Shown: positions 3,626 to 52,680 of the stretch, piece by piece
Position numbering within the stretch: position 1 is the stretch's first letter
Layout of the letters: every line of letters begins with the position of its first letter
Assembly: GCA_950097015.1 (NCBI GenBank)
Contig: CATNEN010000015.1
Coordinates: 1,364,001-1,428,000, forward strand
DNA length: 64,000 nt
Origin: Macrostomum hystrix
Taxonomy: Eukaryota > Animalia > Platyhelminthes
Direction: 5' to 3'
Notes under the pieces: model-generated
The model's input: the letters and a program-made list of their open reading frames with translations, nothing else
Database searches by the model: none
Told to the model about the DNA's origin: nothing
Made by a program: the position numbers and the translations under genes

Positions 3626-5863
3626 TGCATTGCACAGAGATTTGGTTTGAAAGCTTTCTATTTAGAGTTATGACGTTGCAGTTTGTGCAGAGCGTGAGGC
3701 AGTCAGGACAATCCGTGTCTGAGCTACTGTTAAATACTCTCTGCTAGGCATGGGGTGGTCGCTGCAGCACCCGATGCGTTCGCAAGGACTTAACGATTTT
3801 GTTTATGCTGAAACCGTGACAAACAATTCCATTAATTGCTGGAATACTTTCTTACATCCTTGTGATTGCAGCTTAGTGCGAAGTAACTGTGGAGTGTGAA
3901 CTGCCGAGCAAACAGTTCAGCGCTCAAAACGGTGCTATTTTTATTATATTTTTATCCGATGGAATAAGTTGAACTACTCCTGTGTATTTTTCCGATTTTT
4001 CAAATTTAACATTTAATATTTCCCGAACCTTTACCAGTTTTCCCAACGTGTAATATGTCAATCGATAGAAAGTATCAAGATCGATCTATTAATTCTTCTT
4101 TTAAGTCATTGTACGTAATTTCTCATACGATTCTAACAAACCCATAGAAGCGAAAAACTAAAAAGCTGTGTTACGCTAGCTTCATCCCAGGGTGCATCTT
4201 GCCACTGAAAAAACCAAAAGCATAAAAGATGCGCAACAAGTGTTTCTTCAGAATGAGATTTCAACATTTTTTGCGCTTTGGGCAAAAACCCTGAAAAAAT
4301 AGAGTGAAAAGCTTTATAATTCAATTTTGGCATGAAGCATACAAAAATCATGCTTTTAGGAATTATAGTTTCCGATAGAAAATTGTGATAAAAATCGATG
4401 ACTAAATTTTCAGTTCTTCAGAATGTTTTTAGTAGTACTATAATAGTAGGTAGTGTGAAGTCACTTTGCATAGAAAGTACCTTTGCCTCCGTTCCCTGCG
4501 TTTTCGCCGTTGATGTGATCCTGTGAGTGGTACTGCGACTCTTCCCGGTCGTTATGGCCAAAATGGTGCCGTAACTCACTCAGTGTCTCCTTGAATATCT
4601 ATATATACTCGTATATATACATATTGCTGATTTCACGCCTTTAGGTTTCTAGCAGTTGTGTTACTATATTAATACTGTCAGTAGACGTCGACGTACATCC
4701 ATGCTGTCCCTAAAATATTTTCGCAATCTTACCAATGTTATTCTCCCTCAGCCAATGAGCGTGCGAGCTCTCTGTTTGCTCAATTTATCGATCGCCCTCG
4801 TTTTCAGTCGGCCTAGCCTATTTAACTAGGCCCCCTGAGCCTGCCCGCGCTCCCACTCTTCCTCCACCGCGCCTCCTTACCTCCGCACCGCCTCCCTAAC
4901 GCACTGCCTTTCCACTGTCCTGCCGTTCTGTTTCCAGTGCTGTTCTGTTCCTATTTTTGTGCTGCCACGCTGTACCAGGATGTGTTTAGCCTATCTTCTG
5001 CTAGGCCTTCTGTTCTGTTAAAGTAAATAAATTACGATTATAATGCCCACATTTATGACGAAAGTCAACAGAAAATTTGATGGTCCTATACCTCTATCGT
5101 TACGGGCCCCCACAGCACAACTCGTTGTACGTATTTATGCAGAATTTTAAATTGGCGCGGAAATTACCGTATGAATAGCCTCAATATTGTTCGTACGGTA
5201 CTGTACGAATAGCCACTTCCAAGAACGAAAGCGATAACGAGCATAAAAAATACGAATAGCTTACGAGTATCTTTTTAAAAAAATCTAAACGTAATATAAA
5301 TTTCAGAGATGCCATTGTGATTCAGCGGAGTGCCGCTTCGCCGCCCTGATCGGCACCATGTCTAAACGGCAACGTCTGACGATCCGATGTTGTTGACATG
5401 TCAACAAATGAAATTTGTAATGAAATTAGTGACATTATAGCTGTAGGGCCTAGCTGTAGAATGTACAATTACAATTACAATTATATTTGTACAATTGCGA
5501 ATTAAAATTAATTTAAATCACTAACATGTCATGTCACCGTTCAGCGGGCGAGTGCTGAACTATATCGCATTCCCTAATATAGTTCACCGTACGCACGAAT
5601 ATTGGGAATGAAGGAAAAGCTAAAGAGGAAACAAAACTAAGTAATTACGTATTACTTTTAATCTTAATCTAAATAAAGCTATTTACAAATTTAATAATTT
5701 GGCTACTAATCACGAAGTGGTGTGTGTTGTACTGTTGTAGGCCTATTTAATAATGAATCAAATCCCACAGAATGGCACCAAAGTTGTTATTTGATTATTT
5801 AATAAATTCATCTTTTATCTTATCGCTGACACCAAAGTTGTAGTAGGCCTAATATTACAATAG

Positions 5864-6106
5864 TGTGTCGGAGAGTGCACTCTACCCCAGACAGCCGGCC
5901 CCAGACATCACACCACTGTCTGGGCGGATGCGTCACCCCTGCTCGCGCAGTCGCATTGGTTTGCGATCCTCAGTGGGGTTGGGGACATGGAGAAGTCGCG
6001 CTGGCCTTTATAAGGCTCTTTGCCTCAGGCACAGAGCCCTCACACCTTTTTGCGAACTCAAATAAACACGAACTCGTTAGCACAGCCTACTCGGCAACCC
6101 GCTACA
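5864..6106 (+). mobile_element. Solo LTR (243 bp) with 4-bp TSD ATAG
   Basis: TGT...ACA termini; ATAG at 5860-5863 and 6107-6110; internal TTTATAA and AATAAA. Confidence 0.7.
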
Positions 6107-6396
6107 ATAGCTTACTAATGCCACCAAAGTTGTACTAGGGCTATCTTTTATCTTGCTGCTGTTATCACAATCTAGCAGATATGTTTTAAACTGGCGGTCC
6201 TTAAATGGGCAGTTTAACACTTAATATTCCTCAACGTTATTCCCTTCGTAAGCTTCAGTACTCTAATGGTAGCGTTCACTTCACACGATCTGGTAGCGTC
6301 TGTATTGCACGAGCGGTAAATTAAGCAACTGAATGGATTTCTCCAGTCAATTAGGCGTCCCCGAAATTAGACTTTAGCAGTTTCCTCTTGGTAATA

Positions 6397-8737: not shown

Positions 8738-8962
8738 CCTTCGCTGTCACTCAAAGCCTTCGCTGTCACTCAAAGGCTTGGCTGTCACTCAAGCCTTCGC
8801 TGTCACTCAAAGCCTTGACTGTCACTCAAAGCCTTCGCTGTCACTCAAAGGCTTGGCTGTCACTCAAAGCCTTCGCTGTCACTCAAAGGCTTGGCTGTCA
8901 CTCAAAGCCTTCGCTGTCACTGAATCCTTCGCTGTCACTCAAAGGCTTCACTGTCACTCAAA
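8737..8962. repeat. 19-20-bp minisatellite (gccttcgctgtcactcaaa / ggcttggctgtcactcaaa), about 11-12 units
   Basis: Read directly. Confidence 0.95.
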
Positions 8963-9407
8963 GCTGAGAAGTTTACAAATCGCCAAATTTCACTTTATCG
9001 CCAATTTCAGCGTCAGTAAGCTTCGAGCTTTGAGACTTCGAGTCAGCTTTGCTATGAGCTCATTAGCAAAGCAAACTTAGTAAAGCGACGATGATGATTG
9101 AAGCCAATGCTAGAAATCAAGAAGCATGGGTAACTCGCAAACAGTAAAATTAAGACTGTTTTATCTCTTCACTCATTTATCTGTTTGCCTCTATATACTC
9201 GTACTATATATTACTTATGACACACCCGAAGTAGCATATTGGTTCCTAACGCAACTAGGTACGAGCTACATAGCCGGGCTCGACGAGTGCAAAAAAATCT
9301 TATTAGCTTTTAATAAATCTTCCTGATTTCAAATATTAATTTTTTTCTGCTACTGGCGAAATAGCGCCCACCGTTATATTGAAATACTAATTTACCTACC
9401 TGGTGAT

Positions 9408-9748
9408 TGTTCGGATGGTTATTATTTGTCGGGCTGCGTTGTTCTGCAAAATTATTATTATTATTTTTCTCGGCCTAGGTACATGGATGCCAAGGTTGTG
9501 TCGGCCCTTACTGTACGTTCTTTCCGCGTGCGCCAGCCACCCCATTTTTTATAGTATATCAAGCGCTGCTGGACGTTCAATAAGATTAAAGGTGTTGTGT
9601 TTTTTTGTTTGTTTGTTTTTCAATTAAAGATTGCCTGCGCGAGATCGCAGCGTTGACTGCAGGCTTTACGGAGGCCTGACCTAGTGTTAGAACAAAAAAG
9701 TTGATATCTTTGTTTCCTTCCGGTTCTCTTGTCTTTGACTGAAAAACA
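9408..9748 (+). repeat. 5' LTR of the BEL/Pao element
   Basis: Matches 16072-16412 with no difference found by eye. Confidence 0.95.
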
Positions 9749-9751
9749 TAG

Positions 9752-9769
9752 TGGTAGCAGAGCGTGGTT
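9752..9769 (+). promoter_or_regulatory. Primer-binding site (TGGTAGCAGAGCGTGGTT), complementary to an initiator-Met-type tRNA 3' end
   Basis: Starts 3 nt after the 5' LTR. TGGTAGCAGAG is the complement of the animal tRNAiMet 3' end (CUCUGCUACCA). Confidence 0.8.
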
Positions 9770-9775
9770 AGGAAA

Positions 9776-12700: not shown

Positions 12701-15517
12701 GAAATGTATCTCCGCATACGCATTGCACCAGAAGATCGAAGTTTCTTGCGTTTCCTGTGGCGCGCTGGACAAGTTGACCAAACACCGGAAGTTTTTGAGT
12801 TTCAGAGTGTCGTATTCGGTGTCAATTGCTCGCCGTTTCTGGCACAGTTCGTGTCGCAGGAGCATGCCAGGAAGCACCAGGTGCTGTTCCCCAGAGCAGC
12901 GGAGACGATTCTGAAGTCCACTTACATGGACGACAGTTTAGACTCAGTGAACGACGTAGAAGAAGCAATTGCGCTCCGCAACGAGGTGTCAGCTCTATGG
13001 GCCAAAGCCGGGATGAGAGCACGAAAATGGATGTCGAATTCGGCCGAGGTGCTGGAAACGATCCCGGTGGAAGATCGAGCCATAAAAGCGCAGCATGTGA
13101 TTCGCGGCGAGACAGCTTCATCGAAGGCGCTGGGAGTGACCTGGACAGGCCACGATGACATGCTCTCGGTCACTGGAAGTGAAGTCGGCAAGACAGCGCG
13201 AGTAGAATCAAAGCGACAGCTGCTTAAACGAGTGGCGAGTGTCTTCGATCCGTGCGGCTTTCTCAGTCCGTTCACGATTCGCGGAAGAATTCTCCTGCAG
13301 GAGATTTGGCAGAATGGAGCTGACTGGGACGAGCCGTTAGATCACCAAACTGGTGCGAAAGCCACACAATGGGCTGCTGAGATCGTGGCGCTAAGCTGTC
13401 TAACAATCCCAAGATGTCTATGGCCAGATCCAAGCAAGAAGGCGGTGCTGCACGTTTTTGTCGATGCGTCTCAGCTAGCATATGGCACGGTTATTTACTT
13501 GAGGAGCACGACCGGAGCTCAAATCTGCGTACGGCAAGCGGCAGCGAAGGCACGGGTTGCTCCACTGACAACCTGCAGCATTCCAAGACTGGAGCTCATG
13601 GCAGCAGTGCTTGGCGTTCGGCTAGCTCAGACGGTAGCAGAGGCACTCAACTTGGAGTTAAAGGAAGCGGTGTTCTGGAGTGACAGCACTAATGTGCTCT
13701 GGTGGCTGCGAGGTCGGAGTCGGATTTTTAAGCCTTTCGTAGCGAACCGGGTTGCGCTTATTCAAGAGGTGGTGAGGACCAACCAATGGCGACATGTACC
13801 AACTGATCACCATCCTGCAGATGTCGTGTCACGAGGCTGCAGCGCGGAAGAGCTTTGCCAGTCCGCAGTCTGGACGGAAGGACCCGCTTTTTTGAGAGGG
13901 GAGGAGGAAAACTGGCCGGAGAAGCTGGTTCCAATGGCAGATGGTGGAGATCAGGAAGTGCGGCGGGAAGCGATGAAGAGCGGTTCAAGTGTCGCCATGA
14001 TGACGATGTTGGCTGATGAAGTACCAGAGGTCGAGTGGCGACTGGATCCAGTACGATTTTCCAGCTACAAGAGGCTGCGCAGTGTTACGGCTTGGGTTCG
14101 GCGCTTTATCTTTAATTGTGGAGTGTCACTGGGTCAGCGTCGTCAAGGTGAACTAAGTGTCGACGAACTGCAAGAAGCTGAGGAAGCTATTCTTCAAAGA
14201 GCGCAGGATGAAGCATTCCGCGCTGAGCTTCGTCAAGTGCGTGCCGAGAGGTCGGTCCTACCAACCAGTCATCTCCGCTGTCTGCAGCCGTTTTTAGACA
14301 GTGCGGGGCTTTTGCTCGTAGATGGCAGACTGATGTTCGACCAAAATCTGCCCTACCAGGCCAAGCATCCAGTCATCCTGCCGAGGCGAAGCTGGACTAC
14401 GAAGTTGCTGGTGAAGCACTACCACGAAGAGCAAGGGCATGGTGGGACGAACCAGACGTTGTCCGCGCTTTCAACTAAGTTTTGGCTGATCGGTGGTCGC
14501 GAAGCTATACGTGAATGGGAGAAGGAGTGTGCTCACTGCAGAAGGCAGAAGGCAGTGCCGCAGGTGCAGCAGATGGCGCCGTTGCCGGAAGCAAGGCTCA
14601 GAAAGTCCCTTCGAGCATTTAGTTGCGTCGCAGTAGATTACGGAGGCCCATTTGAGACGGTGCAGGGACGTGGAAAACGACGCCAGAAGAGGTACCTGGC
14701 CCTCTTCACCTGTTTGGAAACGAGAGCAGTGCACCTAGAGATGGCGTATGGTTTGGATTCGGATTCTTTTTTAAATGCGTTCGCCCGAATGATCAATCGC
14801 AGAGGAAAGCCGGTGGAAGTATTTTCCGATAATGGTGGAAACTTTGTGAAGGGTGAAAGAGAGCTGAGGAGTTTCGAAAGAGAGCAGCAAGAAAAACTGA
14901 GACGGTCAGCAGCCGAGCGTGGCATCAAGTGGCATTTCCAGCCTCCATCCGCGCCCCATTTTGGTGGGGCTCATGAAGTCATGATCCGCGCCGCCAAGCG
15001 AGCCGTGCACGCGATTCTCGGCAACGCTGACATCACGGACGAGGAGTTGCACTCCGCCTTCACTGGTGCTGAGGCCCTAATCAATGCAAGGCCATTGACG
15101 TACCAGACCTCAAATCCGAAGGACGACACTCCGTTGACACCCAACCATTTTCTACATGGCCAGCTGGGCGGCGACTTTGCTCCGGAAGCCGAGAACGAAA
15201 GCAACCAAGGTCTACGACGACGGTGGCGACGTGTTCAGGAGCTTGTGCGGCACTTCTGGCACCGCTGGTTGCGCGAATGGGTCCCCAGGCTCAACGCGAG
15301 GTCCAAGTGGTTCAACGAGCAGCCCGACCTAGCCATTGGAGACATCGTCCTGGTGCTGACACCGAACGATCCGCGAGGACAATGGCCGCTCGGACGGGTG
15401 CTCGAAGTTTTCCCTGGCCGGGACGGCCGCGTGCGAGTTGCGAAGCTTCGAACTAGCGGTGGGCCTGTGCTGCGGCCAGTGACTAGATTGTGTCTCCATC
15501 AGCGTGATGGTCAGTGA
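9776..15517 (+). CDS. BEL/Pao Gag-Pol polyprotein (~1913 aa from ATG 9776)
   Basis: Three Cys/His knuckles (CRFCEGPHGVWDC, CFHCLGVNHSGLTC, CGVDGCLGKHHSMLH), protease LLDDAS, RT YMDD, Pao RNase H (FVDASQLAYG), integrase HHCC and DDE (VDYGGP, SDNG); no stops or frameshifts. Confidence 0.97.
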   Translation: MPKETEESEDQASAAAEEQELQLMEAKANKTKAKTAFTKSRNRLVQRLAAGASDFSEVQQLATTLEHQFDDVTAALEKLLEIADDNIPMRHQTLKEIDTVESDYGETVILMTEMLKGVRKQAAAEEEEGARLAEREEQKRLEQQRKEAELRALELESAQIELENDYRRRNEQLAEELKRLRVVTGKADGVGAGTSLTERAELERDESGGRGKQADGTAHEGGSETRSIQPMPSPKTPAAVQSRSPNVHQQTVHPLSTSRGAEVEAQVSNDMWRQLQRVAIPNFAGDKRQYEGWKAAFYACVDAAPSSQVYKLLQLRQCLQGEALRLIANLGHSEYAYKAALERLEREYGGERRRLVLVIEDLDSFRPIVMESAPQLKKLADLLDVAVINLMEAGRESELNSNGLLHLRVQKKLPTDTLARYHRWIGDSGRADTLSALHQWLLRESEYQTVAMEAVRGIAAQGASGLTKHDNSKRFPPPQRTETLRTHFGETPETGAISEIRKKSCRFCEGPHGVWDCPKFAELDVAKRWAKAREKRLCFHCLGVNHSGLTCRRARPCGVDGCLGKHHSMLHQNREARPPVSRTEEASKKAAVSGSWLKKERTMLAEVAKETALRTVPVVLVAGERQVRINALLDDASTRTYLNADVAAELGLEGKPQRISVKVLNGGIESFETAPVEVTVQSIDGAFEASVVAFTAEKVTGGMKAVDWSRLAEHWAHLRGIPFDSTAGRPTVDMLIGVDNAEMHLACKEVCGMPGEPIARLTPIGWTCIGQVDQEGGSNQRLESFLCHECQDQVNSEIQKLWTIDDVPDSAALNGGRGTLTKDEQCALKAVKNSMTMVDGRYQVSIPWKARDCELPNNREMAERRLVSTEKRLQQREGLTREYQAVLDGQLAKGYVKKVGDINESQATNWYLPHFPVIREDKDTTKVRMVFDASARSQGKSLNDIILPGPKLQNDLFKVLLRFRRGPVAVVCDIEEMYLRIRIAPEDRSFLRFLWRAGQVDQTPEVFEFQSVVFGVNCSPFLAQFVSQEHARKHQVLFPRAAETILKSTYMDDSLDSVNDVEEAIALRNEVSALWAKAGMRARKWMSNSAEVLETIPVEDRAIKAQHVIRGETASSKALGVTWTGHDDMLSVTGSEVGKTARVESKRQLLKRVASVFDPCGFLSPFTIRGRILLQEIWQNGADWDEPLDHQTGAKATQWAAEIVALSCLTIPRCLWPDPSKKAVLHVFVDASQLAYGTVIYLRSTTGAQICVRQAAAKARVAPLTTCSIPRLELMAAVLGVRLAQTVAEALNLELKEAVFWSDSTNVLWWLRGRSRIFKPFVANRVALIQEVVRTNQWRHVPTDHHPADVVSRGCSAEELCQSAVWTEGPAFLRGEEENWPEKLVPMADGGDQEVRREAMKSGSSVAMMTMLADEVPEVEWRLDPVRFSSYKRLRSVTAWVRRFIFNCGVSLGQRRQGELSVDELQEAEEAILQRAQDEAFRAELRQVRAERSVLPTSHLRCLQPFLDSAGLLLVDGRLMFDQNLPYQAKHPVILPRRSWTTKLLVKHYHEEQGHGGTNQTLSALSTKFWLIGGREAIREWEKECAHCRRQKAVPQVQQMAPLPEARLRKSLRAFSCVAVDYGGPFETVQGRGKRRQKRYLALFTCLETRAVHLEMAYGLDSDSFLNAFARMINRRGKPVEVFSDNGGNFVKGERELRSFEREQQEKLRRSAAERGIKWHFQPPSAPHFGGAHEVMIRAAKRAVHAILGNADITDEELHSAFTGAEALINARPLTYQTSNPKDDTPLTPNHFLHGQLGGDFAPEAENESNQGLRRRWRRVQELVRHFWHRWLREWVPRLNARSKWFNEQPDLAIGDIVLVLTPNDPRGQWPLGRVLEVFPGRDGRVRVAKLRTSGGPVLRPVTRLCLHQRDGQ

Positions 15518-16058
15518 TTGCTCAGAAAGTGACTGTCTTGTGAAAGTACAAACTGTTAATTAATGTTGTGTTTTTTGGATTAATTGGTGTTTCTGTTGAA
15601 TTTCTGATGCTGTTGTTAGTGGTTTAACCGTTGCCTTTTGCATAGTCTTTGCATGGTTTTCCTGCTATTGTGGGTATTAGGACTAGTTTTTCGCTTTAGA
15701 TCGTTTATGTCGCATATTTGCACTAATAATGTCTTGTGTTTTCAAGGATTTCGCTGGTCAACCATTTTTTTGCGCAAAGATTTCTGTCGGTTATGGTTTC
15801 TTTAAAAATGCTTTACAGCTATGAAGTAGTGAAAATTTTGCCTTTGTGATTTTACAGTGTTTCATTATTCCTTTTGGTGTTGGTTGTCATTAGTTGCGGG
15901 ATCGGCGGTTAATAGTTTCATGAGCCTGTAATCCGCGTTCCTAATGTTTTCTCGGTTTTGAGTTTATCAAGTTTATCATATTTGCTTTTTTGTTTTGTTG
16001 CACGGCTTCTTTGTTGTGTGGGATTTGGTTTTCGCCTTTTTGCTGATAGTGCTCTATC

Positions 16059-16069
16059 AGGAAGGGAGG
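16059..16069 (+). promoter_or_regulatory. Polypurine tract (aggaagggagg)
   Basis: Lies just upstream of the 3' LTR. Confidence 0.8.
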
Positions 16070-16071
16070 TA

Positions 16072-16412
16072 TGTTCGGATGGTTATTATTTGTCGGGCTG
16101 CGTTGTTCTGCAAAATTATTATTATTATTTTTCTCGGCCTAGGTACATGGATGCCAAGGTTGTGTCGGCCCTTACTGTACGTTCTTTCCGCGTGCGCCAG
16201 CCACCCCATTTTTTATAGTATATCAAGCGCTGCTGGACGTTCAATAAGATTAAAGGTGTTGTGTTTTTTTGTTTGTTTGTTTTTCAATTAAAGATTGCCT
16301 GCGCGAGATCGCAGCGTTGACTGCAGGCTTTACGGAGGCCTGACCTAGTGTTAGAACAAAAAAGTTGATATCTTTGTTTCCTTCCGGTTCTCTTGTCTTT
16401 GACTGAAAAACA
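16072..16412 (+). repeat. 3' LTR of the BEL/Pao element
   Basis: Copy of 9408-9748, followed by the TSD GTGAT. Confidence 0.95.
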
Positions 16413-16854
16413 GTGATCATTTGCATCGTTAGCCCGATGCTCTCGCCTGTGAAATCGCATTCAGGTTTCGTGTGAGAATTTTTTTTACGTTTGACTAAAG
16501 TTTGATCGGTTTTGATTTGCTACCCTCAGCAAAAATATATAGGATTTAATAATTGGAACCAACTTTAAAGAGTGCAATGTGATCAAGTGTCAATTTATAA
16601 CTTTAGAAAGTTTGCCTCTAAAAATACTACTTACTAATTGAACAAAGTAGTATATGCCTAAATGCCAAGTTTTATAGTGAGGCTCAGAAAGCTCTACAGT
16701 AAACGAATCAAGAAACCTGCCTGCATCGCAGACTATCATTCGGGTTCTCAATGCCGTTGTTCTGTCCTGTAGGCCTAGGGCCGTTTTATCATCCTGCTGA
16801 GGGCAATTGTGGTGTTGGGTGCCTTTTCAAGTCGGCGACCAGATGCGAAGCAAA

Positions 16855-35877: not shown

Positions 35878-37990
35878 GATTGGAGTGGGCTGGGGTTATG
35901 GAGGATGGGTGGGGTCAGTGTTCTGGAGTGGCTGGGGTTATGGAGGATGGGTGGGGTCAGTGTTCTGGAGTGGCTGGGGTTATGGAGGATGGGTGGGGTC
36001 AGTGTTCTGGAGTGGCTGGGGTTATGGAGGATGGGTGGGGTCAGTGTTCTGGAGTGGCTGGGGTTATGGAGGATGGGTGGGTGGGGTCAATGTTATGGAG
36101 TGGCTGGGGTTATGGAGGATGGGTGGGGTCAGTGTTCTGGAGTGGCTGGGGTTATGGAGGATGGGTGGGGTCAGTGTTCTGGAGTGGCTGGGGTTATGGA
36201 GGATGGGTGGGGTCAGTGTTCTGGAGTGGCTGGGGTTATGGAGGATGGGTGGGGTCAATGTTATGGAGTGGCTGGGGTTATGGAGGATGGGTGGGGTCAA
36301 TGTTATGGAGTGGCTGGGGTTATGGAGGATGGGTGGGGTCAGTGTTCTGGAGTGGCTGGGGTTATGGAGGATGGGTGGGGTCAATGTTATGGAGTGGCTG
36401 GGGTTATGGAGGATGGGTGGGGTCAGTGTTCTGGAGTGGCTGGGGTTATGGAGGATGGGTGGGGTCAGTGTTCTGGAGTGGCTGGGGTTATGGAGGATGG
36501 GTGGGTGGGGTCAATGTTATGGAGTGGCTGGGGTTATGGAGGATGGGTGGGGTCAGTGTTCTGGAGTGGCTGGGGTTATGGAGGATGGGTGGGTGGGTCA
36601 GTGTTCTGGAGTGGCTGGGGTTATGGAGGATGGGTGGGTGGGGTCAATGTTATGGAGTGGCTGGGGTTATGGAGGATGGGCGGGGTCAGTGTTCTGGAGT
36701 GGCTGGGGTTATGGAGGATGGGTGGGTGGGTCAGTGTTCTGGAGTGGCTGGGGTTATGGAGGATGGGTGGGGTCAGTGTTCTGGAGTGGCTGGGGTTATG
36801 GAGGATGGGTGGGTGGGTCAGTGTTCTGGAGTGGCTGGGGTTATGGAGGATGGGTGGGTGGGGTCAGTGTTCTGGAGTGGCTGGGGTTATGGAGGACGGG
36901 TGGGTGGGTCAGTGTTCTGGAGTGGGCTGGGGTTATGGAGGATGGGTGGGTGGGGTCAGTGTTCTGGAGTGGCTGGGGTTATGGAGGATGGGTGGGGTCA
37001 GTGTTCTGGAGTGGCTGGGGTTATGGAGGATGGGTGGGTGGGGTCAGTGTTCTGGAGTATGCTGGGGTTATGGAGGATGGGTGGGTGGGTCAGTGTTCTG
37101 GAGTGGGCTGGGGTTATGGAGGATGGGTGGGATTGGGTCAGTGTTCTGGAGTATGCTGGGGTTATGGAGGATGGGTGGGTGGGTCAGTGTTCTGGAGTGG
37201 GCTGGGGTTATGGAGGATGGGTGGGATTGGGTCAGTGTTCTGGAGTATGCTGGGGTTATGGAGGATGGGTGGGTGGGTCAGTGTTCTGGAGTAGCTGGGG
37301 TTATGGAGGACGGGTGGGTGGGGTCAGTGTTCTGGAGTGGGCTGGGGTTATGGAGGATGGGTGGGTGGGTCAGTGTTCTGGAGTAGCTGGGGTTATGGAG
37401 GACGGGTGGGTGGGTCAGTGTTCTGGAGTAGCTGGGGTTATGGAGGATGGGTGGGTGGGTCAGTGTTCTGGAGTGGGCTGGGGTTATGGAGGATGGGTGG
37501 GTGGGTCAGTGTTCTGGAGTAGCTGGGGTTATGGAGGACGGGTGGGTGGGGTCAGTGTTCTGGAGTGGCTGGGGTTATGGAGGACGGGTGGGTGGGTCAG
37601 TGTTCTGGAGTAGCTGGGGTTATGGAGGATGGGTGGGTGGGTCAGTGTTCTGGAGTGGCTGGGGTTATCGAGGATGGGTGGGTGGGTCAGTGTTCTGGAG
37701 TGGGCTGGGGTTATGGAGGATGGGTGGGTGGGGTCAGTGTTCTGGAGTGGGCTGGGGTTATGGAGGATGGGTGGTTGGGGTCAGTGTTCTGGAGTGGGCT
37801 GGGGTTATGGAGGACGGGTGAGTGGGTCAGTGTCCTGGAGTATGCTGGGGTTATGGAGGATGGGTGGTTGGGGTCAGTGTTCTGGAGTGGGCTGGGGTTA
37901 TGGAGGACGGGTGAGTGGGTCAGTGTCCTGGAGTATGCTGGGGTTATGGAGGATGGGTGGTTGGGGCCAGTGTCCTGGAGTGGGCTGTGG
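35878..37990. repeat. G-rich minisatellite, 42-bp base unit (ggagtggctggggttatggaggatgggtggggtcagtgttct) with +4-bp variants, roughly 48 units
   Basis: Read directly; strongly G/T-skewed top strand; the long ORFs here are repeat artefacts. Confidence 0.97.
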
Positions 37991-38701
37991 ATATATTGAC
38001 AGACTAATCAACGCGCTGCGGCAGAGGGCACCCACTTTACTACGCATTAGAAATACAACATGAGGCGGTTCAAAAACGAAAAAATGACGAAAAAAGTTAG
38101 ATTTTTCCTTGCCAGGCTCTCAATACCATATAGATTTGACTACACAAATGCGAGCTTGTTATGAAACTGGTAACCACTGGGAGTTAACTGCTTATTTAGT
38201 GCATGCCGTGTATTGCTCATATTCAGCTTTAGAGTACATGTTAAAATGACAAAAATAAGCGCAAGTCGCAGGTGCAGAACTGGAGCAGAAACAGAAGAAC
38301 AGCCAATTGCATCGACCCCAAGGCTTGTCAATTGTTTCAAAGTACATGGTACAAGCTAAGGGCGAGACAGATTTCAGGGTATGATTTAGCAAAAGAAACG
38401 CGCTGGAACCTGAAATGCTAAACAATAACGATTAGCACAACACTGAGGGCCACAATTGTGCTGCTGAGAAATATGAGACAGAGAGAACGCAGAGACAATG
38501 ACCTACTCGAATGAGTAAATATTTGAGAACAGTGGCAGGGATTATTACAATGTGACACAACAAAAACACTTGGGCGTAGGGCAAGCTGTTTGATGGGCCA
38601 GTCTATTAGTTAATTAATTAAAGAGGGCTTACACTGGTAGTTAAACAGCATGAAAAGATAATAGGAATAAAAATAGGCCCCGCTTGAGCAGCTCCGAGTA
38701 C

Positions 38702-41700: not shown

Positions 41701-44700
41701 ATCTTGCCGCAGTTGTTGATGATGTGTTCGTCGGTGGTGTAGGGCGGCCCAGGCTCAGCGCCGTCGAACAGGTAGGGGTGGTTGGCGCACTTCCTGAGCT
41801 GCATGAGGATGTTCAGCAGGCGAGTCTTCTCTGTCTTGCCGGCTCCGTTAACCACGTCGATGTCCTTCATGAGCAGGCGGGTGTACATCTCGCGCTGCAT
41901 GTGGCTGAGGCCAATGTAGATCTTTGTCTCCTTCTTAGGCAGCAGGGCCTTCTCTACGTCGGCTTTGACGCGGCGCAGCAGGAAAGGGCGAAGGATCTGG
42001 TGCAGGCGGCTGTGGGCGATTGTGTGATGGTCTATGTCTATGGACTGGTGCGACCCAAGTTGGTAGCCATTTTACAGCTAGTTTAACTGAAGCACTGGGG
42101 AATTGGGTGTCTGGCTTAAGGACAAAGTCGCTTTAAGGACAAGAAGGTTGTTGCTTCATGGTTAGAGCGTTGGACTCACGACTTGAAGGTCCGGGGTTCG
42201 ATTCTCAATCTCGACTTTACTGGAACAATTTGTGTCGTTTAGCAAGACACTTAATTCAAAATAGCTTCAGTTCACCCAGCTTTTAAATGGGTACCAGCAT
42301 TAGCTGGGATAATTGAAGGTGGGTGTGGCGTCCCCCCAGTCAGATGCGCCGTGCAATAGCTGCGGCTGTGCTGTCGGCTGCACATCTGGCCCAATTGGGG
42401 CAGGTGTAATCAATTATTATTAAATGCATTATCAAGGACAAAAAGCGCTTTCCATTAGAAACCTTAACTCCTCGGTTAGAAGTGTGAAGTTCTGAACCAC
42501 TGCCCCACTACACTGGGCAGACTCATTATTATGCAGAAATGCGACTTTTTACTCACCGAATGAGGTCCTGCTGCTGGTCCAGGGACTCCGGGTTGAACCA
42601 GGAGTCGAACTCCTCGCTATTGCTGAACACATCGGGCAGCAGGAAGTTGAGGAGGGCCCAGAGCTCGTGCAGGTTGTTCTGCAGCGGAGTGCCGGTCAGC
42701 AGCAGCCGGTTAGAGGACTTGAGCTCGCGAATAATTTCGGACAGCTTGCTCTTCTCATTCTTGATGCGGTGCGCCTCGTCGATGATGATATAGCGCCAGT
42801 TGAACTTCTTCAGCAGGGCCTTCTCGCGGATGATCATCTCGTAGGAGGTGACAAGAACGTCCCAGTCTCCAGGCAGGATGGTCTCCTTGATGAGGTTGTT
42901 GCGAGTCTCCTGGTCGCCAATTAGGCAGACGGATCGCAGCGTCGGCACCCAGCGCTCGATCTCCTTCATCCAGTTCTGCAGGGTGGACTTGGGCGCGATG
43001 ACCATGTGTGGGCCCGAGTGTTGCCTGTAGTGCTTCATGAAGCCAATCAGGGAGATGGTCTGCAGCGTCTTGCCCAGGCCCATCTCATCAGCCAGGATGC
43101 CGTTGATGCCGTTCTCGTACAGGGAGATCATCCAGTTCAGGCCGCGGATCTGGTAGTCGCGCATCTCGCCGTTCTTTACATACCAGGGGCTGGTGTCGAA
43201 GCGCGAGATCTCGCCCGGGTCGGCGCTCTCAGCGGCCGTCTGCGACAGCAGTTCATCGTCTTCCTCCTTCTCGGTGCGCCGATGCCGATGGTCGCCATCT
43301 TTGGACAGCTGGCGCATGAGACTGCTGCTGCTGCCAGCCTCAGCCAGCTTCAGCTTCAGCGGGCTGGTGACCTTGCGAGAGCGCGCCACGCCAGCCGCGG
43401 CTGTGCCGGTTTCAATGAAGTGGCTGAACAGCTCAGTCTGCTTGATGAGGTACTCGAAGCGCTTAGTCCTGTCATGCTCCAGCTTGTTTTCGAAGGCGGG
43501 GTCGCGATGGCCCGAGCCGGCATCTGGGGCGACGAATTTTTGCCTGGGCTTACCATCAGCACTGGGAGTCCACTGGCCAGGGTGGGAGAATAGGGGATAA
43601 GGCCATAACTTTGCTTACTATGCAGACGATAAATAATTGGCTTTTGAACCTCTACACCTTAATATACAGCATATTGGTGGTTAAGATCTTTAAAAGAAAA
43701 TATTAGCATAAAAATTTCTTAAGGGATATGTGTAAACCATTTAAATTGGGAAAACTCATGATAAGCAACTAGATAGTGGAAACTTAATGCACCTTTCCAG
43801 AACTGTAACTTATCTGTTACTCTAGACAGAACTATAGCATCTATATCTTCAAAGATATACTGGTATATAATTAGAAAAAAAGAAATGGCTACATCCTGAA
43901 GCTATAGAACCTGAATTAAAATATAGCTATGGAGATTTAGGCAGCACTCATCCTCACTGTCCCATGCAAAAAATTCTGAAATAAGCCTCATGGTAACATT
44001 CCATCAGTCATCATTTGCTACTTTATGCGAATGCTACAGTGATAATAGCTGCTGACCCCAAAACTAGATTGTATAGACTGGTAATTTAAACACATTATAC
44101 CATAAATTTTATAAGTCAGTTGTGAGAGTTAAATTATAAAGCAGTGATAATTTCAAATAACGCACAACTTAAATCTCACATTAAAACTGCTTTCGAAAGT
44201 TAATTTTCCTTATTATCTCTGTTTAAGTAAAAAAACTTATAAACTGAAAACTGAAAATATAAACTGAATCACAGATACAATGCAAAAAAAGTTTTTTTTT
44301 CAATGCGTTAGTCTGAGTCTGAATACAATCCATTTTGGTTTTGGTAAAAACTGCTTGGGCATATTAATAGGCCAAATGAGTAATAACTTATTGCTATCCA
44401 AGTTAGCAAAAAACTGTTTTCTTAGGCTATAATATTTTACACACAAATTACATTTTACAGTCTTGTGCACTGTGTTTTCTCTTCTGTCTATCAGAATTAA
44501 AACTTAAATGTATATACAAATATGCATACTTAGGATACATTTGGGCTTACTAATTACTCTCAATTTTGAGCTACAAATTTTAACTAATAAATGTCAATAG
44601 AATGATTTTTAAGGAAGTGTTAAAGCAATGATGGTCAAGCATTATGCAGGATGATTGTCAATATTGAACTCTAACTGGTCAGGTACAAATCCAGGTACAG

Positions 44701-45350
44701 AGCTTCCTATACCAGTCTAATACCACTCTAGTGTAATGCAGCAGGCAGTTAACATGTTGAGAAATTTTTAATTCAACATATTCTATGGTCACCCTTGTTT
44801 CTTGGTTGACTTTAGCTTTTTGTACCTTATATTATAAAGGAAACAGTGATTTTGTGAATTTTATACAAAGTACTAACACTAATTCATTTAAGGAAGTTTG
44901 TTTCTGCCCCTCTCCACTTTGGTTCCTGTATTGGCAAGTGTATTAGATTAGAATAGGAGACATTAAGTTTTGTTATTTGCCATTTGTCATGTGCTGATTC
45001 CTTAGCTGAATCCTGGTTCATGGTCTTGTTTTTTTTAATTCAGCATATCATAATCTATTGGATAGAAACAAACATAACTTGTATGACAATTTTTGAACTA
45101 ATTATGATAAGTGCTAAAATTAAAAATTTATTTTTTACTATGTTCAAAATCAAAATTTGGAAAAGCAAAATCTACTTAGGATCGATCTTCAGTCAAATAT
45201 AAAGTAAAATTCAACATAAGGCAACAATAGGCCTAAGGCTTAAACAATAATACTATTTTCATTTAAATACATTTTATCCTTAGGCCTACAAATAGATAAT
45301 GAAAGGCCATTTAAAAAGCAATTCTCGTCACTCACCTCATCATCCGACAT
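38702..45350 (-). CDS. ISWI: ISWI/SNF2H chromatin-remodelling ATPase; exons 45350-45336, 43572-42557, 42009-41352, 41260-40677, 40590-40467, 40089-39781, 39010-38702 (1004 aa)
   Basis: [62 protein letters not shown]; HAND-SANT-SLIDE ([28 protein letters not shown]); junction phases consistent. Confidence 0.96.
39062..39360 (-). mobile_element. tRNA-derived SINE family 2 copy (ISWI last intron)
   Basis: Head gtggcagagcg...gagctcgattcc on the minus strand; body shared with 48586, 54317 and 56927. Confidence 0.8.
39460..39605 (+). mobile_element. SINE family 1, partial copy
   Basis: ttcacccagc...gagggtgggtgtggcgt...catctggcccaatt. Confidence 0.7.
42146..42425 (+). mobile_element. tRNA-derived SINE family 1, near full-length copy in an ISWI intron
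   Basis: A box tggttagagcg, B box ggttcgattc, core gcaagacacttaa...cagttcacccagct...aaatgggtacc, AT-rich tail. Confidence 0.85.
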
Positions 45351-46145
45351 TTTTTAAAATTGACTCTGCCTGGCTGTTTGAAGCAAAGTATTTAAAATAA
45401 TGCGAAGTGTTTAACTGTTAAAATTTAAATAGGCCTATAGGAGCAGTAAAGGACAGTCTAATTAATTATATAACAAATACGTATTACTTTGTAAATATAT
45501 TTTAAATTTATCAGCGTTTAGTTTTGTTGATTAGTTTATCTGTGTTTTTGCTATAATTTCTATTAGCATTAACACCACATAGGCCTAGCTATATTACACA
45601 GAGCATGCAGCAAGCCCGACCACAGCTCTCAACGGAGCAGTTGTTTTTTTTTCTTTAAAAATCAAGAAAGTAACATAGTCAAAAGAGCAATAATAAACAA
45701 AAAGTGTTTCTACTGTCTTCTTTTATATTTTTGTATTTTTCTTATATTAAGTTCGGTAATTTTATGACACTTTTTGTTTAATTTAACGTTTTATACGTTA
45801 AAAAGAAAGCCGAAAGTTCATTAGAATAATGGCGGCTCGGAAACTATGTTTTAATGTGTGTCAACTGAAAATTTCTTGCATAGCGAAAAAATTGCGAATA
45901 TGAACTATATTTTCATGACCGCGATGAAAATGACCATGCGCCACTAAATTATATTACAACTATACCTATTTTAAAACGTATATTTCAAACTGTATTTATC
46001 TATGTATCGTTGTTTGAATTCAAGGTAATAATTATGCAATGCGAGATATTTAGCAGTCTTGCTAGTTCATGGCTACAATGATTTCATTTTCAGAATTTTT
46101 TAAAATATACATTAGCTATCTACTATGACTTGTGTGTACATTGCC

Positions 46146-46325
46146 TAGCTAGGCCAGGATAATTGAAGGTGGATGTGGCAACCCCCAGTCCATAGACTGA
46201 ACAGTTGTAGGGGGCCTACTCAGTCTTCAGATAGGGGCCTACACCACAATTGATAGCTGCAGCTGTGCTGTTGGCTGCATAGGCCTATCTGGCCCGATTG
46301 GGACAGGTGTAATCAGTTATTATTA
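46146..46325 (+). mobile_element. SINE family 1, 3' portion, interrupted by GGCC-type micro-insertions
   Basis: Aligns to 27440-27550 and 42300-42420 apart from short insertions at TA sites. Confidence 0.8.
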
Positions 46326-47506
46326 ATTAATTATCTGGCTATAACTAGCCCTTCTACTAGTTATAGTATAGGCCTATTAGCTAAAATTCAATAATTAAAT
46401 TAAAATAATAACAATGGTAGGGGCTCCAGTGAGAATTAAAAATAAAGAATTCTATATTTTTGGTTATCTTGTGTTACAGATCTTGCTTGTCTGAGTTAAA
46501 AGACACCTCACTCATCAAAATTTGTCAAGTAATAAAAAATTTATAACAAATTTTGATCAACATTTTAGTTGTTTTCATAATTTATTTTTCCTATAAGGGG
46601 CTGTGATCCAGATGACCAGATAGATTTGACTTGGAAAACAAAAAAAATGCAATAACTTTATTTTTAATGGATTTTTTAAATTCCAAAAGCATATAGTACA
46701 TTTTTTCGTTATCTACACTATTAATATTATATATATATATATCTTCTATTAGGCCTAACACTCAGCATTAAAGTATTAAATTTCGATTTTACATTGATTA
46801 GGATTACTATGCTGACAAGATGTGTTTATTTGTTTACAATATAAAACTCATTTGGCTTTAAAGAAGTGGCAAAGCCATACCTATTCCATAGCTTAACAAA
46901 TAGACATCGCACAGACATAAATTTACTAGGCCTATTTACAGTCAATTGCAAAAGCCATCTGAAATGCGTAAAGGGGGTACATTAGAGAAACATGTTTCCA
47001 GGCGATTCCACTAAAGGTTTGAGTATATCATATTCTACATTAAATTCTACATTAAATTTTAATGGGATACACTTGGAAAACACTAAAAACAATGATTGAA
47101 AAAAAAAAGATAATTTCAACCAAAAAATTCACAAAGTAAAAAACAGTCTTTTACTAAAAAAGAATTGTTAACATTGATTTTTATATCATCTTTCAAATAC
47201 AAGTACAAAAATGTTTCTGAATAAAAAGAATTTCGAATATATGTCAAAAGAAAGAGTCTTTCAAACTTATGCTTAGAATTAAGGTTTCATATAGAGCAGA
47301 GCCTAATGGGAATTATGTTTGGTTAACATTTAAATTTAGCATTGCTAGGCCTATCAGTAGGCCAAGCTACAACTGTGATGTTGCCTTCATATATTTTTTA
47401 ATATTAATTTTAACATTAGTCTGTTGCCGATGATATTTGTTAAGCAGAAATATTTTACAGAGTGTATTGAACATGAATGTTAAAATCTCTTCAGCCGTCA
47501 CAACTC

Positions 47507-50302
47507 ATGAATGTGTCAGTCATTGTGATTGACTCTGATGATGACAATGAGCAACAGCCTATACAGCGGCAGCAGCAGCAGAGAGCACTTGTCACCCCAG
47601 CCTCCTTAGCAGCTGCAGCTGCCATAAAAGCCAGAGCAGTTGTGCCCCAGCCACCACCCCAGCATGCCAACTATGCTGGCAGCCTTCAGAGCGTCAAGCT
47701 CGGCGGCTTCGTGCCTCTCAACTGTACCGTCACCACCGCCGCCGCCAATGCCCACTCGCGCCGCTTCAAAGAGACTCCGCGAGGCCGAAAGTCCACCGGA
47801 GGTCTCTGTGTCAGCTCGGCCATGCGCCAGCTGGCCTCGCCCCCGACACCTCCGCCAACCCCGCCAGTCAAGCTACAGGCGGTGGTCAGCAACGGCCGCC
47901 TTGTGCCCTCCCCATCGCCTGCCAAGCCGCTGCCGCCAGCCGCAACCTACGAGTCTGTGATTGAGAACGAGAACAACTACATTGACTACACTGAGTACTT
48001 CTACTGCCGCGAGTTCGACCCCACGGAATCCGTGACGTCATCGGCGGCCGCTGCGCCCATCACGCAGGGGCCGTTCACCTACGCCTGCTGCGTCTGCCCC
48101 GCCCGGCTTCCCAGCGCCCACCTGGCCGCTGAGCACATCCTTGAGCACCTGCTCAGTGCCCGAATCCAACGCGCCAGCTTGTCAGCGCACACCCGCTGTC
48201 CCCGCTGCCTCCGCAGCTTCGCCACTCCGGCCCGCATGCAGCGGCACCTGAGTCGCGCCCACCCCACCTCCCAGCCGGACGAGTCCGCCCTGGTCTGCCG
48301 CGTCTGCGAGCTGCACTTCGACACAGACGCCCAGCTCGCCAGCCACCTGCACTGTGCGCATCCGCCTCGGGACATGCCCTACCGCTGCGAGCTGTGCGCC
48401 CACCGCTCCAGCTGCCACGCCGATGTTATTCGGCACTTTTACTCGTTCCACGCCACCAGCGGGGAGCTGCTCTGCCAGTTCTGCTTGAAAGTGTTCCGAT
48501 TTCAAAGCGGTGAGTTGATAAAACTGTCCGGAATGAGCACCAGCAGGTCATGTGTGCTTCACTATCAAGAATAAAAATAATTTTAGGAGGGCTGCGGGCA
48601 ATGGCACATCATTTACTGACACCAGACCCGCAGCTAGTGAGGAGGCAATTCTGCCCATTCCGCTGACTCCTGAGCACACACAGATACCTTGACGCTGGCA
48701 CACACTCACACAGGTGCCTTGGGGGTCGGCCCTCAAGGGCGTAAATTGCACGAAAAGCCTACAAGCCTTCTCTCCGCGTTAAACGCTCCGCCGCTGAGCC
48801 CTGAGGATCGGTTTAAGAATCACCGTTTGTCCCAAACAGGCCAGATGTGCAGCCGAAGCACAGTCGCGGCGCATCTGAAGGCTGCATGCAGCCGACTGTT
48901 TAGTCCATGGACTCGGGGGGATACCACACACCCTCAATCCGATGCACTAAACACTAGGCTACGTAGTTCATAAACTTTAACAAGCCGTACCCTGATAGAC
49001 AGAGACAGCACTCAATGTTGACTTCTGCGGGCTTTGACCGACCCTCAGGTCCCGGCCAGTCAGCCACCCAGTCGCTAAGCTCCTATTACACCCACCTGCG
49101 CGCACACCTGGCTGATCAGTGCGGCTCAGACGGTGACGCGAATAGCAACGCCTGCTCCCGCTGCCGGTTGCACTTCCTCAGCCGGCGGAATCTGCGGCGC
49201 CACGCCGACTCCGATCACAATGGCAAAAGCTTCAACCTATTCGAGCTGACCGCGCCTGCTGCTTCAACTGCCGCCAACTCAGCCGCGGCAGCTGCGGCCA
49301 TCCGCAGTTTAAACGCGGCGCCGGCATCCAGACTGTGCGGCCTCGCTCAGCTGAAATATCGAGTCCGCAGGCAGCAATCCTGCCTGGAATGCCAGCGCCC
49401 GATGTGTCTGACAGGCGAGTTCGAATGTCTAGCATGACTTCTTAGAACAGGTGTAAACAGGTAAACAGGTGTACAGTGCAAGTGATAACAGACAGAGGGA
49501 TTCCAACCATCGCAGGTCACTATCATCGCGAGTTCCTCTGCCCGGCCTGTCGCTACGTCACCTGCTGCGGCGACGCGTTTGCGCGGCACGAGAGGCGGCA
49601 TCGAGCGGGCGTCGCCGGGCCGTCCGCCCTGACCAAAAGTGCTTCAAGGCCGGCGCTTGGCGAGGTCGGAGTCGGCGCTGGCAACAGCAAGTCGGCCTAC
49701 GCCCTCTACTGCCGCTGCGGCTTCGTAACTGCTGACGGCGATGCCATGGCCAGGTGAGCGAGTCTACGAGATGGTTCTCATTGCTATTAGACAGTCTATT
49801 AATTATCCCAAAAGCATGACATGTCTCCAATTATCCCAATAGTTCCCAAAGCAACACCGGTCTACAATTATCTCAATAATTCCCAAAGCAATCCACCGGT
49901 CTCCAATTGTCCCAAAAGTTCCCAAATCAACACCTGGTCTCCAATTGTCCCAAAAGTTCCTAAAGCATCTATAATTCTCACCTGTGCATCAGGCACGTGG
50001 CTGTTGGCTGCCGTGTCAGCAGTGGGGTGAGTCGAGGCTGTTCCTCTGCATCAGCGGGCGCTACTCAGCGCTGGCAGGGCTACAGCAGTGTGCGCCTCAT
50101 CCGTCGGGCACGTCATCGGAAAACCCGCCAGCTGAGGCGGCAGCAGCGGCTGCGCAACGCTTTGAAGCCTGCCGCAGCGCAGGACGGAGCTGCCGGACCA
50201 ATCAAGGTGCCCTTCGAGGCGGTGATGGCTGATTTGGCGGTTCCCAGCGGAGTGCCACTGCTGGAGTCTGTGGGCTTGGGCAAGAGAATCGTTGCCATTT
50301 AG
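47507..50302 (+). CDS. POGZ/ZNF280-like multi-C2H2 zinc-finger protein without a transposase domain; exons 47507-48509, 49049-49414, 49516-49753, 49993-50302 (638 aa; 5' end uncertain)
   Basis: YRCELCAHRSSCHADVIRHFYSFH..LLCQFCLKVF and CRYVTCC match the POGZ/ZNF280 finger cluster as I recall it; phases are consistent using one GC-AG intron. Confidence 0.75.
48586..48830 (-). mobile_element. SINE family 2 copy
   Basis: gacccgcagctagtgaggaggcaattctg...ggccctcaag...aagccttctctccg shared with 39080-39280. Confidence 0.75.
48855..48950 (-). mobile_element. SINE family 1 fragment
   Basis: gcagccga.agcacag...gcgcatctgaaggctg...ctgtt.agtccatggact. Confidence 0.65.
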
Positions 50303-51230: not shown

Positions 51231-51947
51231 GATTGATATTCCCAATATCCCATAGGTTGATATTCCCCAATATCCCATAGATTGATATTCCCCAATATCC
51301 CATAGATTGATATTCCCAATATCCCATAGATTGATATTCCCCAATATCCCATAGATTGATATTCCCAATATCCCATAGATTGATATTCCCCAATATCCCT
51401 TAGCTTGATATTCCCCAATATCCCATAGATTGATATTCCCAATATCCCATAGATTGATATTCCTCAATATCCCTTAGCTTGATATTCCCCAATATCCCAT
51501 AGATTGATATTCCCAATATCCCATAGATTGATATTCCCCAATATCCCTTAGCTTGATATTCCCCAATATCCCATAGATTGATATTCCCCAATACCTCATA
51601 GATTGATATTCCCCAATATCCCATAGATTGATATTCCCCAATATCCCATAGATTGATATTCCCAATATCCCATAGATTGATATTCCCCAATTTCCCTTAG
51701 CTTGATATTCCCCAATATCCCATAGATTGATATTCCCCAATACCTCATAGATTGATATTCCCCAATATCCCATAGATTGATATTCCCCAATATCTCGTAG
51801 ATTAATATTCCCCAATATCCCTTAGCTTGATATTCCCCAATATCTCGTAGATTAATATTCCCCAATATCCCTTAGCTTGATATTCCCCAATATCCCATAG
51901 ATTAATATTCCCCAATATCCCTTAGCTTGATATTCCCCAATATCCCA
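51231..51947. repeat. 24-25-bp minisatellite (gatattccccaatatcccatagatt, variant ...cccttagctt), about 29 units
   Basis: Read directly. Confidence 0.95.
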
Positions 51948-52680
51948 TTTACTCTATGAAGAAACTATGCCGTGGTGGTATTCAGCACAAACATAGTAGG
52001 CAATATTTCAGAAACCAATTTCCTGCTAAATACGTACAGAAAATACAGACGTTATCTCTGGTTGGTGACTTAAAAAACGTTAGTAAACTAGTCTTCTCGA
52101 TTCTCACTTCTGACCTTGGCTGTGATCCTGTCAACTGCCGGTTGCTTATCTCTGCTTGTGTCGTGTTTGGCATGTAGTCTAGACAAGAGGTTGATTGTAC
52201 TGCACTGGCCTATTCGCATGCGTAGTGACGATTACAACTTGTTGAAAAGTTGATAATGACTGGAAAATTGAGACATCCGATGGAAGGAAAGCTGAACGAA
52301 AATGCGTTTAAAATAATAAATGACACCAAAGGCTAATAGGCCCGTCTGAACACATGTTGAAACTGGAAGATGACACACATTGTTTTGAATGTCTCTGTCG
52401 AGTTTCTAATTTCGCAGCCAGCTAATCTTGCCGATTAAATCTAACGCTCGCTAACTATATCGTTTTTTTTCTGCAAAGCAAACAATTGCAATCACAAAAC
52501 ACGCAGAAGTCTGGTTTCAGAACAGCTAGCGATAAGGCAGACAGCTATTTAGGGACAGTGGGCCCTGAAAACTGCTGATAAGCTACTGCGCTGCAGGACT
52601 GCGGAGAAGCCTCACTTCGGGGACAATAAGCTCCAGCTACTATATCCGATTGTCAACTCCCTCTGTCTCAAGTGTGAGCC

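Follow-up and report, generated by a model that had tools for sequence, protein, structure and literature searches.

A nonrandom cluster of TA-G(2-5)CC-TA sites in the transcribed flanks of two divergent RNA starts in the flatworm Macrostomum hystrix

This study investigated a 64,000-nucleotide stretch of Macrostomum hystrix DNA (assembly GCA_950097015.1, contig CATNEN010000015.1, positions 1,364,001 to 1,428,000; hereafter the window, with positions counted from its first letter), in which the palindromic 8-mer TAGGCCTA is concentrated around the 5' ends of two genes, ISWI and a C2H2 zinc-finger (POGZ-like) gene (Table 1). Public contigs of the sequencing runs X1-X4 were placed on 43500-47700. 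The contigs of runs X2-X4 are partly complementary DNA (cDNA), carrying Nextera and template-switch oligonucleotide ends, and in three runs a contig joint connects 43572 with 45336, whose CT..AC borders correspond to a GT..AG intron on the minus strand. The search with the zinc-finger exon returned a Macrostomum lignano protein (74% identity) as its sole relative, and the search with the ISWI exon returned no close relative. The ISWI cDNA contig of run X2 (45623) carries 24 additional 5' letters that are absent from the window and could stem from an exon farther upstream, a spliced leader, or chimerism of the contig.

The window contains 12 exact copies of TAGGCCTA, compared with 0.62 expected from shuffled sequence. 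Nine of them were located within 45228-47353, and a first-order Markov model predicted 0.036 copies for the stretch 45200-47400. In the surrounding AT-rich 4-kb block (43600-47600), the nine copies compare with 0.053 expected, a 169-fold excess that is the highest of all 8-mers in the block; other TA-N4-TA palindromes were not enriched there. With the longer forms TAGGGGGCCTA (46208) and TAGGGGCCTA (46232), the focal cluster comprises 11 sites in 2.1 kb. The original prediction, which was made from the letters alone, had named these nine exact copies and two long forms, and every coordinate was confirmed. Its chance estimate of approximately 0.02 per exact 8-mer was of the right order of magnitude, and its GC content of approximately 30% applies to 43600-47600 only, because the whole window has 48% GC. 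The TAGGCCTA cluster is thus a real and strongly nonrandom feature. No description of the motif was found in the literature on the motif itself, on Macrostomum promoters, or on Macrostomum transposons. The first 400 letters of the Macrostomum lignano EFA promoter (PMC5730564, Supplementary Data 1), a sample far too small for a judgement on scar type, contain TAGGCTA and TAGCCTA 23 bp apart and no TAGGCCTA.

We then counted all TA-G(g)-C(c)-TA forms on both strands of the window and compared the counts with those of a second-order model. The GGCC form was observed 12 times (0.43 expected), and the GGGCC, GGGGCC, and GGGGGCC forms were each observed once (0.19, 0.04, and 0.01 expected, respectively). 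The GC form (TAGCTA; 14 observed, 11 expected) and the GGC/GCC forms (including TAGGCTA; 8 observed, 4.4 expected) were not enriched, and the symmetrical (3,3) form was absent from the window count. The enriched set consists of TA-G(2-5)-CC-TA only, a nested and one-sided series in which CC is constant and G varies from 2 to 5, and the 4-nt GGCC form is dominant (12 of the 15 sites of the window). Besides 46208, the five-G form is found in another repeat copy, at a different TA, and, reverse-complemented with one change, at 4827; because it occurs at unrelated TA sites, it is a recurrent and discrete outcome. Adjoining double units were identified at 16770 (TAGGCCTAGGGCC) and 4810 (GGCCTAGCCTA), as expected if the TA of a scar were struck again. 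When the flanks of the sites were compared, the bases outside TA varied on both sides, the third base included, and the target is therefore TA and not TWA or TTAA.

A BLAST search of the focal region against the window identified six other copies of a high-copy short interspersed element (SINE), which were compared with the focal copy (approximately 46130-46327) in alignment A1. The results revealed three extra blocks in the focal copy, namely GTTGTA(GGGGGCCTA)C.., CAGATA(GGGGCCTA)C.., and GCATA(GGCCTA)TCTGG, the last of which can equivalently be read as GCA(TAGGCC)TATCTGG. Each block has TA on either side and is absent from all six other copies. The three SINE interruptions in the original prediction were thereby substantiated; a fourth, described as similar, is indeed a 5-nt insertion but is noncanonical. 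In run X1, 22 contigs of other SINE copies stop at the insert end 46287 or at most three bases past it, and the consensus directly before this insert reads ..GCTGTCGGCTGCAC. Contigs of runs X3 and X4 covering 46851-47085 have exactly six letters fewer at 46926 and carry a single TA in place of TAGGCCTA; they also differ at 4 to 6 other letters and thus represent either an allele or a close paralogue. In another copy of the second repeat, found at a loose end of run X3 at 46475, GTGTTA-GGGGGCC-TACAG stands where the window has GTGTTACAG. A local empty-versus-filled comparison is offered by 5770-6160, where three paralogous CACCAAAGTTGT segments are followed by a plain TA (5790), AGTAGGCCTA (5842), and ACTAGGGCTA (6134). 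Taken together, the SINE alignment, the empty sites in paralogous copies, the contig with TA alone at 46927, and the recurrence of the five-G product at a different TA demonstrate that the sites arose as repeated, independent insertions of G(n)CC with TA duplication. The original prediction had proposed such independent insertions with a variable G count and had conceded that the GGCC blocks might already belong to the SINE consensus; in alignment A1 and in the contigs, the consensus is without them.

We further analyzed the positions of the sites relative to the transcripts. All 11 focal sites lie in transcribed flanks, from +43 to +395 on the ISWI side and from +327 to +1465 on the zinc-finger side, and two TAGGCCTA sites are part of the mature ISWI 5' untranslated region (5'UTR). 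None of the 11 lies in the 258-bp core between the RNA 5' ends. The cluster had been assigned to the ISWI/POGZ promoter region, which is accurate in that it flanks both transcript starts but not with respect to the core, which is empty. The stretch that harbors 11 of the 15 window sites holds 7.6% of the TA dinucleotides of the window (P = 5e-10), and the AT-rich block itself has 0 sites per 170 TA on its left and 11 sites per 249 TA on its right (P = 0.002). TA density alone is therefore insufficient for the clustering, and these findings support a bias of the sites towards the surroundings of active transcript starts that exceeds TA density. The sites at 45281, 45430, and 45580 follow each other at 149 and 150 bp, approximately one nucleosome, a spacing that could be due to chance. 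The 57-bp inverted pair at 45228-45288 was considered as a meaningful structure and rejected; its 3 bp of complementarity beyond the palindrome is not significant among approximately 10 neighboring pairs.

The DNA that received the sites is itself a landing pad for mobile elements, and 46038-47165 is high-copy repeat according to contig depth (1000-15000). No further copies of the repeats at 46380-47165 were found in the window. The observed/expected ratio of CpG is 0.17 in ISWI intron 1, 0.43 in the plus-strand leader, and 1.44 in the 258-bp core, and that of GpC is approximately 1.5 throughout. The focal SINE copy has lost all four consensus CpGs and drifted to A+T, whereas copies elsewhere retain three of three, and the coding exons adjoining 43600-47600 are not depleted of CpG. 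The loss is suggestive of CpG methylation in the germline, or of another process converting C to T, that may be limited to the transcribed flanks. One-mismatch variants of TAGGCCTA number 19 in the window (approximately 20 expected), and the focal cluster contains one such variant compared with nine exact copies. Because decayed copies remain at the chance level while the host SINE has lost all its CpGs, the sites are either recent or constrained. Universal constraint is made less likely by the second cluster (4808-6143), most of whose members are decayed or variant. Within it, TAGGGCCTA is flanked by a 9-bp direct repeat; at site 5444 (5437-5458), GGCC lies between two copies of TAGCTGTAG, so that the direct repeat of 9 bp extends beyond TA alone.

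Table 1. Transcripts, host DNA, and motif sites, with positions in the window
Feature	Position	Strand	Description
AT-rich, CpG-poor block	43600..47600		31% GC; sharp borders to exons of 57-72% GC
ISWI intron 1	43573-45335	-	GT..AG joint
TAGGCCTA	45228..45235		ISWI intron 1; donor 107 bp away
TAGGCCTA	45281..45288		ISWI intron 1; 11-bp inverted pair with the 45228 site (TAGGCCTAAGG / CCTTAGGCCTA)
ISWI 5'UTR exon 1	45336..45623	-	contig 45336-45623 at depth 314
TAGGCCTA	45430..45437		within ISWI 5'UTR exon; carried by spliced RNA contigs
TAGGCCTA	45580..45587		within ISWI 5'UTR exon, +43 from exon 5' end
Core between divergent RNA 5' ends	45624..45880		258 bp; no motif; CpG observed/expected 1.44
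Plus-strand transcribed leader	45881..47476	+	template-switch oligonucleotide junction marks RNA 5' end at ~45881
Repeat-derived DNA receiving six sites	46130..47165		SINE, second repeat, and high-depth DNA
High-copy SINE copy	~46130-46327	+	(ATT)n-like tail; 3-4 insertions
Noncanonical TAGCTAGGCC(A), TAGCT(AGGCC)AGGAT	46146..46155		5-nt insertion relative to other SINE copies
TAGGGGGCCTA	46208..46218	+	duplicated TA plus GGGGGCC at the TA of SINE GTTGTA-CGCAG
TAGGGGCCTA	46232..46241	+	duplicated TA plus GGGGCC, in SINE
TAGGCCTA	46280..46287		in SINE; other copies have GCTGCACATCTGG; their contigs end here
TAGGCCTA	46369..46376		immediately past SINE tail
Second high-copy repeat	~46417-46650		more high-depth DNA onward to 47165
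TAGGCCTA	46750..46757		adjoins (TA)n run, within repeat-derived DNA
TAGGCCTA	46927..46934		contigs of runs X3 and X4 have single TA
TAGGCCTA, then TAGGCCAA 4 bp on	47346..47365		112 bp 5' of zinc-finger gene ATG
C2H2 zinc-finger (POGZ-like) gene	47477 (open reading frame start)	+	
Second, more decayed cluster	4808..6143		GGCCTAGCCTA, TAGGCCCCCTG (reverse complement of five-G form), TAGGGCCTA, two exact TAGGCCTA, TAGGGCTA
TAGGCCTAGGGCC	16770..16782		two adjoining units; lone site outside both clusters

TA is the target of Tc1/mariner elements, and a TA duplication with a short constant insert is the signature of their excision. On balance, we lean towards the explanation that the sites are excision scars of a TA-specific, Tc1/mariner-type cut-and-paste transposon that has GGCC(C) ends and integrates next to active starts; the lesion is most likely of this known kind and unusual in its density and location. 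We infer the existence of the transposon, the sequence of its ends, and its preference for particular chromatin. Such an element would enter at TA and duplicate it. On exit, its transposase would cut the non-transferred strand at a distance of a few bases from the element end, and rejoining would leave those terminal bases between the two TAs. The predicted ends are 5'-GGCC(C..) and (..G)GGCC-3'. Retention of 2+2 bases, or clean ligation of a self-complementary 4-nt GGCC overhang, would yield TA-GGCC-TA as a uniform product, and ends of the form GGCCC(CC)...(GG)GGGCC, with more of one end kept, would yield GGGCC, GGGGCC, and GGGGGCC. Several split points would result in an identical GGCC, which would add to the dominance of this form. 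The element would favor positions up to a few hundred bases to either side of the starts of active germline- or stem-cell-expressed transcripts, and with frequent excision by a low-copy element, scars would accumulate while no copy remained. The nested, one-sided G(2-5)CC series favors retained transposon termini, with variable retention of one fixed terminus. Tc1/mariner scars are generally 2-4 bp long, and some members of the superfamily are biased to open chromatin (PMC7913693).

Several points weigh against excision scars. Searches of the 64-kb window for TAGG...CCTA inverted pairs, TA-flanked inverted repeats, and TA-flanked GGCCCC or GGGGCC ends did not identify any element that is bordered by TA and ends in GG...CC. 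The 64 kb likewise yielded no Tc1/mariner transposase, and the Pfam analysis of the large open reading frames returned a BEL/Pao retrotransposon and a family-3 G protein-coupled receptor and no DNA transposase. Absence of the element from 64 kb is not decisive, because frequent excision leaves scars without resident copies; nevertheless, 11 scars without a resident copy in 2.1 kb require an unusually high turnover. The scars of 5-7 nt exceed the usual 2-4 bp, the simple TA-scar model leaves the 9-bp direct repeat at site 5444 unexplained, and the chance-level count of one-mismatch variants suits very recent events and purifying selection on a bound motif equally. A strong preference for transcript starts is not known of classical Tc1/mariner elements. 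Starts similar to TA-GGCCCC.CTGA at 4829, 38676, and the reverse complement of 61548 were considered as element ends and rejected, since they fall within the 3' end of a gene or within paralogous exons.

The excess of exact copies has an alternative reading, in which TAGGCCTA is a putative protein-bound palindromic cis-element that marks the 5' regions of broadly expressed genes and is kept exact by selection, perhaps having been seeded by scars and then co-opted. Such an element would agree with the motif being the sole enriched 8-mer of its kind in the AT-rich block, with its clustering at the 5' ends of two chromatin-regulator genes, with the exact copies in the focal cluster outnumbering one-mismatch copies nine to one, and with the three sites at 149- and 150-bp spacing. 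Selection gives no reason, however, for TA-duplicating insertions, three to four of them within 140 bp of a young SINE, and the 258-bp core between the RNA 5' ends is empty. Moreover, long (G3-G5) and broken forms share the clusters, the one at 4808-6143 being largely decayed, and the 46927 site is missing from the contigs of other runs. As the primary explanation, a bound and selected palindrome appears unlikely; as a secondary use of scars, it is possible. A bolder proposal, which we hold to be quite unlikely, is that either a start-targeted transposon or domesticated transposase keeps writing the exact 8-bp palindrome into DNA of the first nucleosomes of genes expressed in the germline or in stem cells, where it is then bound and kept as a genome-wide 5' mark, or a TA-specific break-and-fill activity operates without any mobile element.

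A transposon-free origin in its simpler form, which we consider very doubtful, would have a nuclease (for example, a domesticated transposase) cut TA in a staggered manner beside active starts, with the ends extended by G before joining. The window contains no source element, the length of the G run varies, and the events are concentrated in the transcribed flanks of active starts, all as this process would predict. Untemplated addition should nevertheless spread lengths on both sides, whereas the number of C is constant at two, that of G is capped at five in three independent cases, and the (3,3) form is absent; furthermore, no TA-specific break-and-repair activity that adds G is known. Telomerase-type addition (TTAGGG-like, TAGG-CCTA) was rejected, since the G4 and G5 forms and the missing (3,3) form do not fit it. 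The nested products, which share the GGCC end and vary at the other, also resemble 5' truncation, as if extremely truncated insertions of a retroelement ending in ...GGGGGCC had resulted from target-primed reverse transcription that began at a nick specific to TA. This origin is highly improbable: a dominant 4-nt copy, a constant 2-bp duplication, and a lack of longer members in 64 kb are unlike retroelement families, and no element with that 3' end was seen in the 64-kb window. Finally, chance, an assembly artefact, and carriage of the motif as part of a repeat consensus retain next to no probability and are refuted. The motif is 170-fold above expectation, short-read contigs of two runs agree with the window letter for letter over 43500-46496, RNA contigs carry sites, and the SINE consensus is without the blocks. 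The original prediction had offered the footprint of a TA-targeting element that favors open germline chromatin or a repair or nucleotide-addition activity that writes GGCC. A bias to active starts is supported; as no such element is present in the 64 kb, the two proposed sources are not decisively separable here.

Other features of the window were also recorded. The BEL/Pao long terminal repeat (LTR) retrotransposon extends over 9408-16371 and has an open gag-pol reading frame of 1917 aa (9764-15517); its LTRs are 100% identical over at least 300 bp (9408-9707 and 16072-16371), indicating a very recent insertion. The region 36000-38000 exhibits a GC skew of +0.76, 0-4 CpG per 400 bp at 57-60% GC, overlapping long open reading frames in three frames, and a G-rich tandem repeat. 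Minisatellites were located at 51231-51948 (25-bp unit, 29 copies, with a 74-bp super-unit) and 8717-8983 (19-bp unit, approximately 14 copies). An Rfam search returned no match.

If the sites are excision scars, a cut-and-paste element that turns over very rapidly in the germline and strongly prefers flanks of active starts is present, or was until recently, in this flatworm lineage; such behavior would be unusual for a TA-targeting element. The scars would then record, like fossils, where chromatin was open in cells of the heritable lineage. By adding exact palindromes to 5'UTRs and first introns of housekeeping genes, they supply raw material for new regulatory sites, and a palindrome that was written by a transposon or transposase and subsequently bound would amount to the de novo birth of a class of cis-elements from excision scars. 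Scars would also be of practical interest for transposon mutagenesis in Macrostomum. The genus serves as a model for regeneration research. Integration of Minos by transposition did not occur in it (PMC5730564), and transposon mutagenesis has been called its most promising forward-genetic approach, for which an efficient protocol is still needed (PMC8629357). If no element exists, the sites point to a new kind of mutational process.

Compared with known systems, the sites are similar in form to Tc1/mariner footprints, which read TACATGTA for Tc1/Tc3, TAC(A/T)GTA for Sleeping Beauty, and TA plus four terminal nucleotides plus TA for Minos. As in these footprints, TA is duplicated around a few constant bases; the extra bases are bordered by TA at each end, and the empty site has a single TA (alignment A1 and the contigs at 46927). 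The dominant GGCC form would correspond to a canonical product that is accompanied by minor forms of other lengths, although GGGCC, GGGGCC, and GGGGGCC are longer than usual. The net insertion of 6 bp is like that of Minos. In contrast to Tc1/mariner footprints, the bases between the TAs are GGCC and not CA..TG or CAG, and they extend to 7 nt. The density of 11 sites in 2.1 kb and the restriction to transcript-start flanks are likewise without a reported counterpart in the superfamily, and the donor here is a postulated one. ISL2EU targets AT (within AATT), and PIF targets TWA (PMC4482050). A PIF/Harbinger or ISL2EU footprint was rejected, since the variable bases outside TA exclude TWA and AT targets. 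Hairpin (P-nucleotide) footprints of the hAT/Transib type consist of palindromic extra bases that are copied from the flanks and differ by site; this type was also rejected, given an identical GGCC at 15 sites with unrelated flanks.

A tendency to occur near active transcript starts and in AT-rich DNA is shared with P elements, piggyBac, Tol2, and mPing (PMC7913693 for piggyBac and Tol2). The duplications of these elements are 8-bp, TTAA, or TWA, whereas the target here is TA. At fly housekeeping promoters, the DNA replication-related element (DRE; TATCGATA) is bound by DREF in the core promoter, and no insertional origin is known for it. The sites resemble the DRE in being an 8-bp TA-N4-TA palindrome with an enrichment at the 5' ends of genes that are broadly expressed. 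The DRE-type position, the core promoter within approximately 200 bp upstream of the start, is occupied by 0 of the 11 sites, and the M. hystrix palindromes thus differ from the DRE both in leaving the core empty and in their insertional origin.

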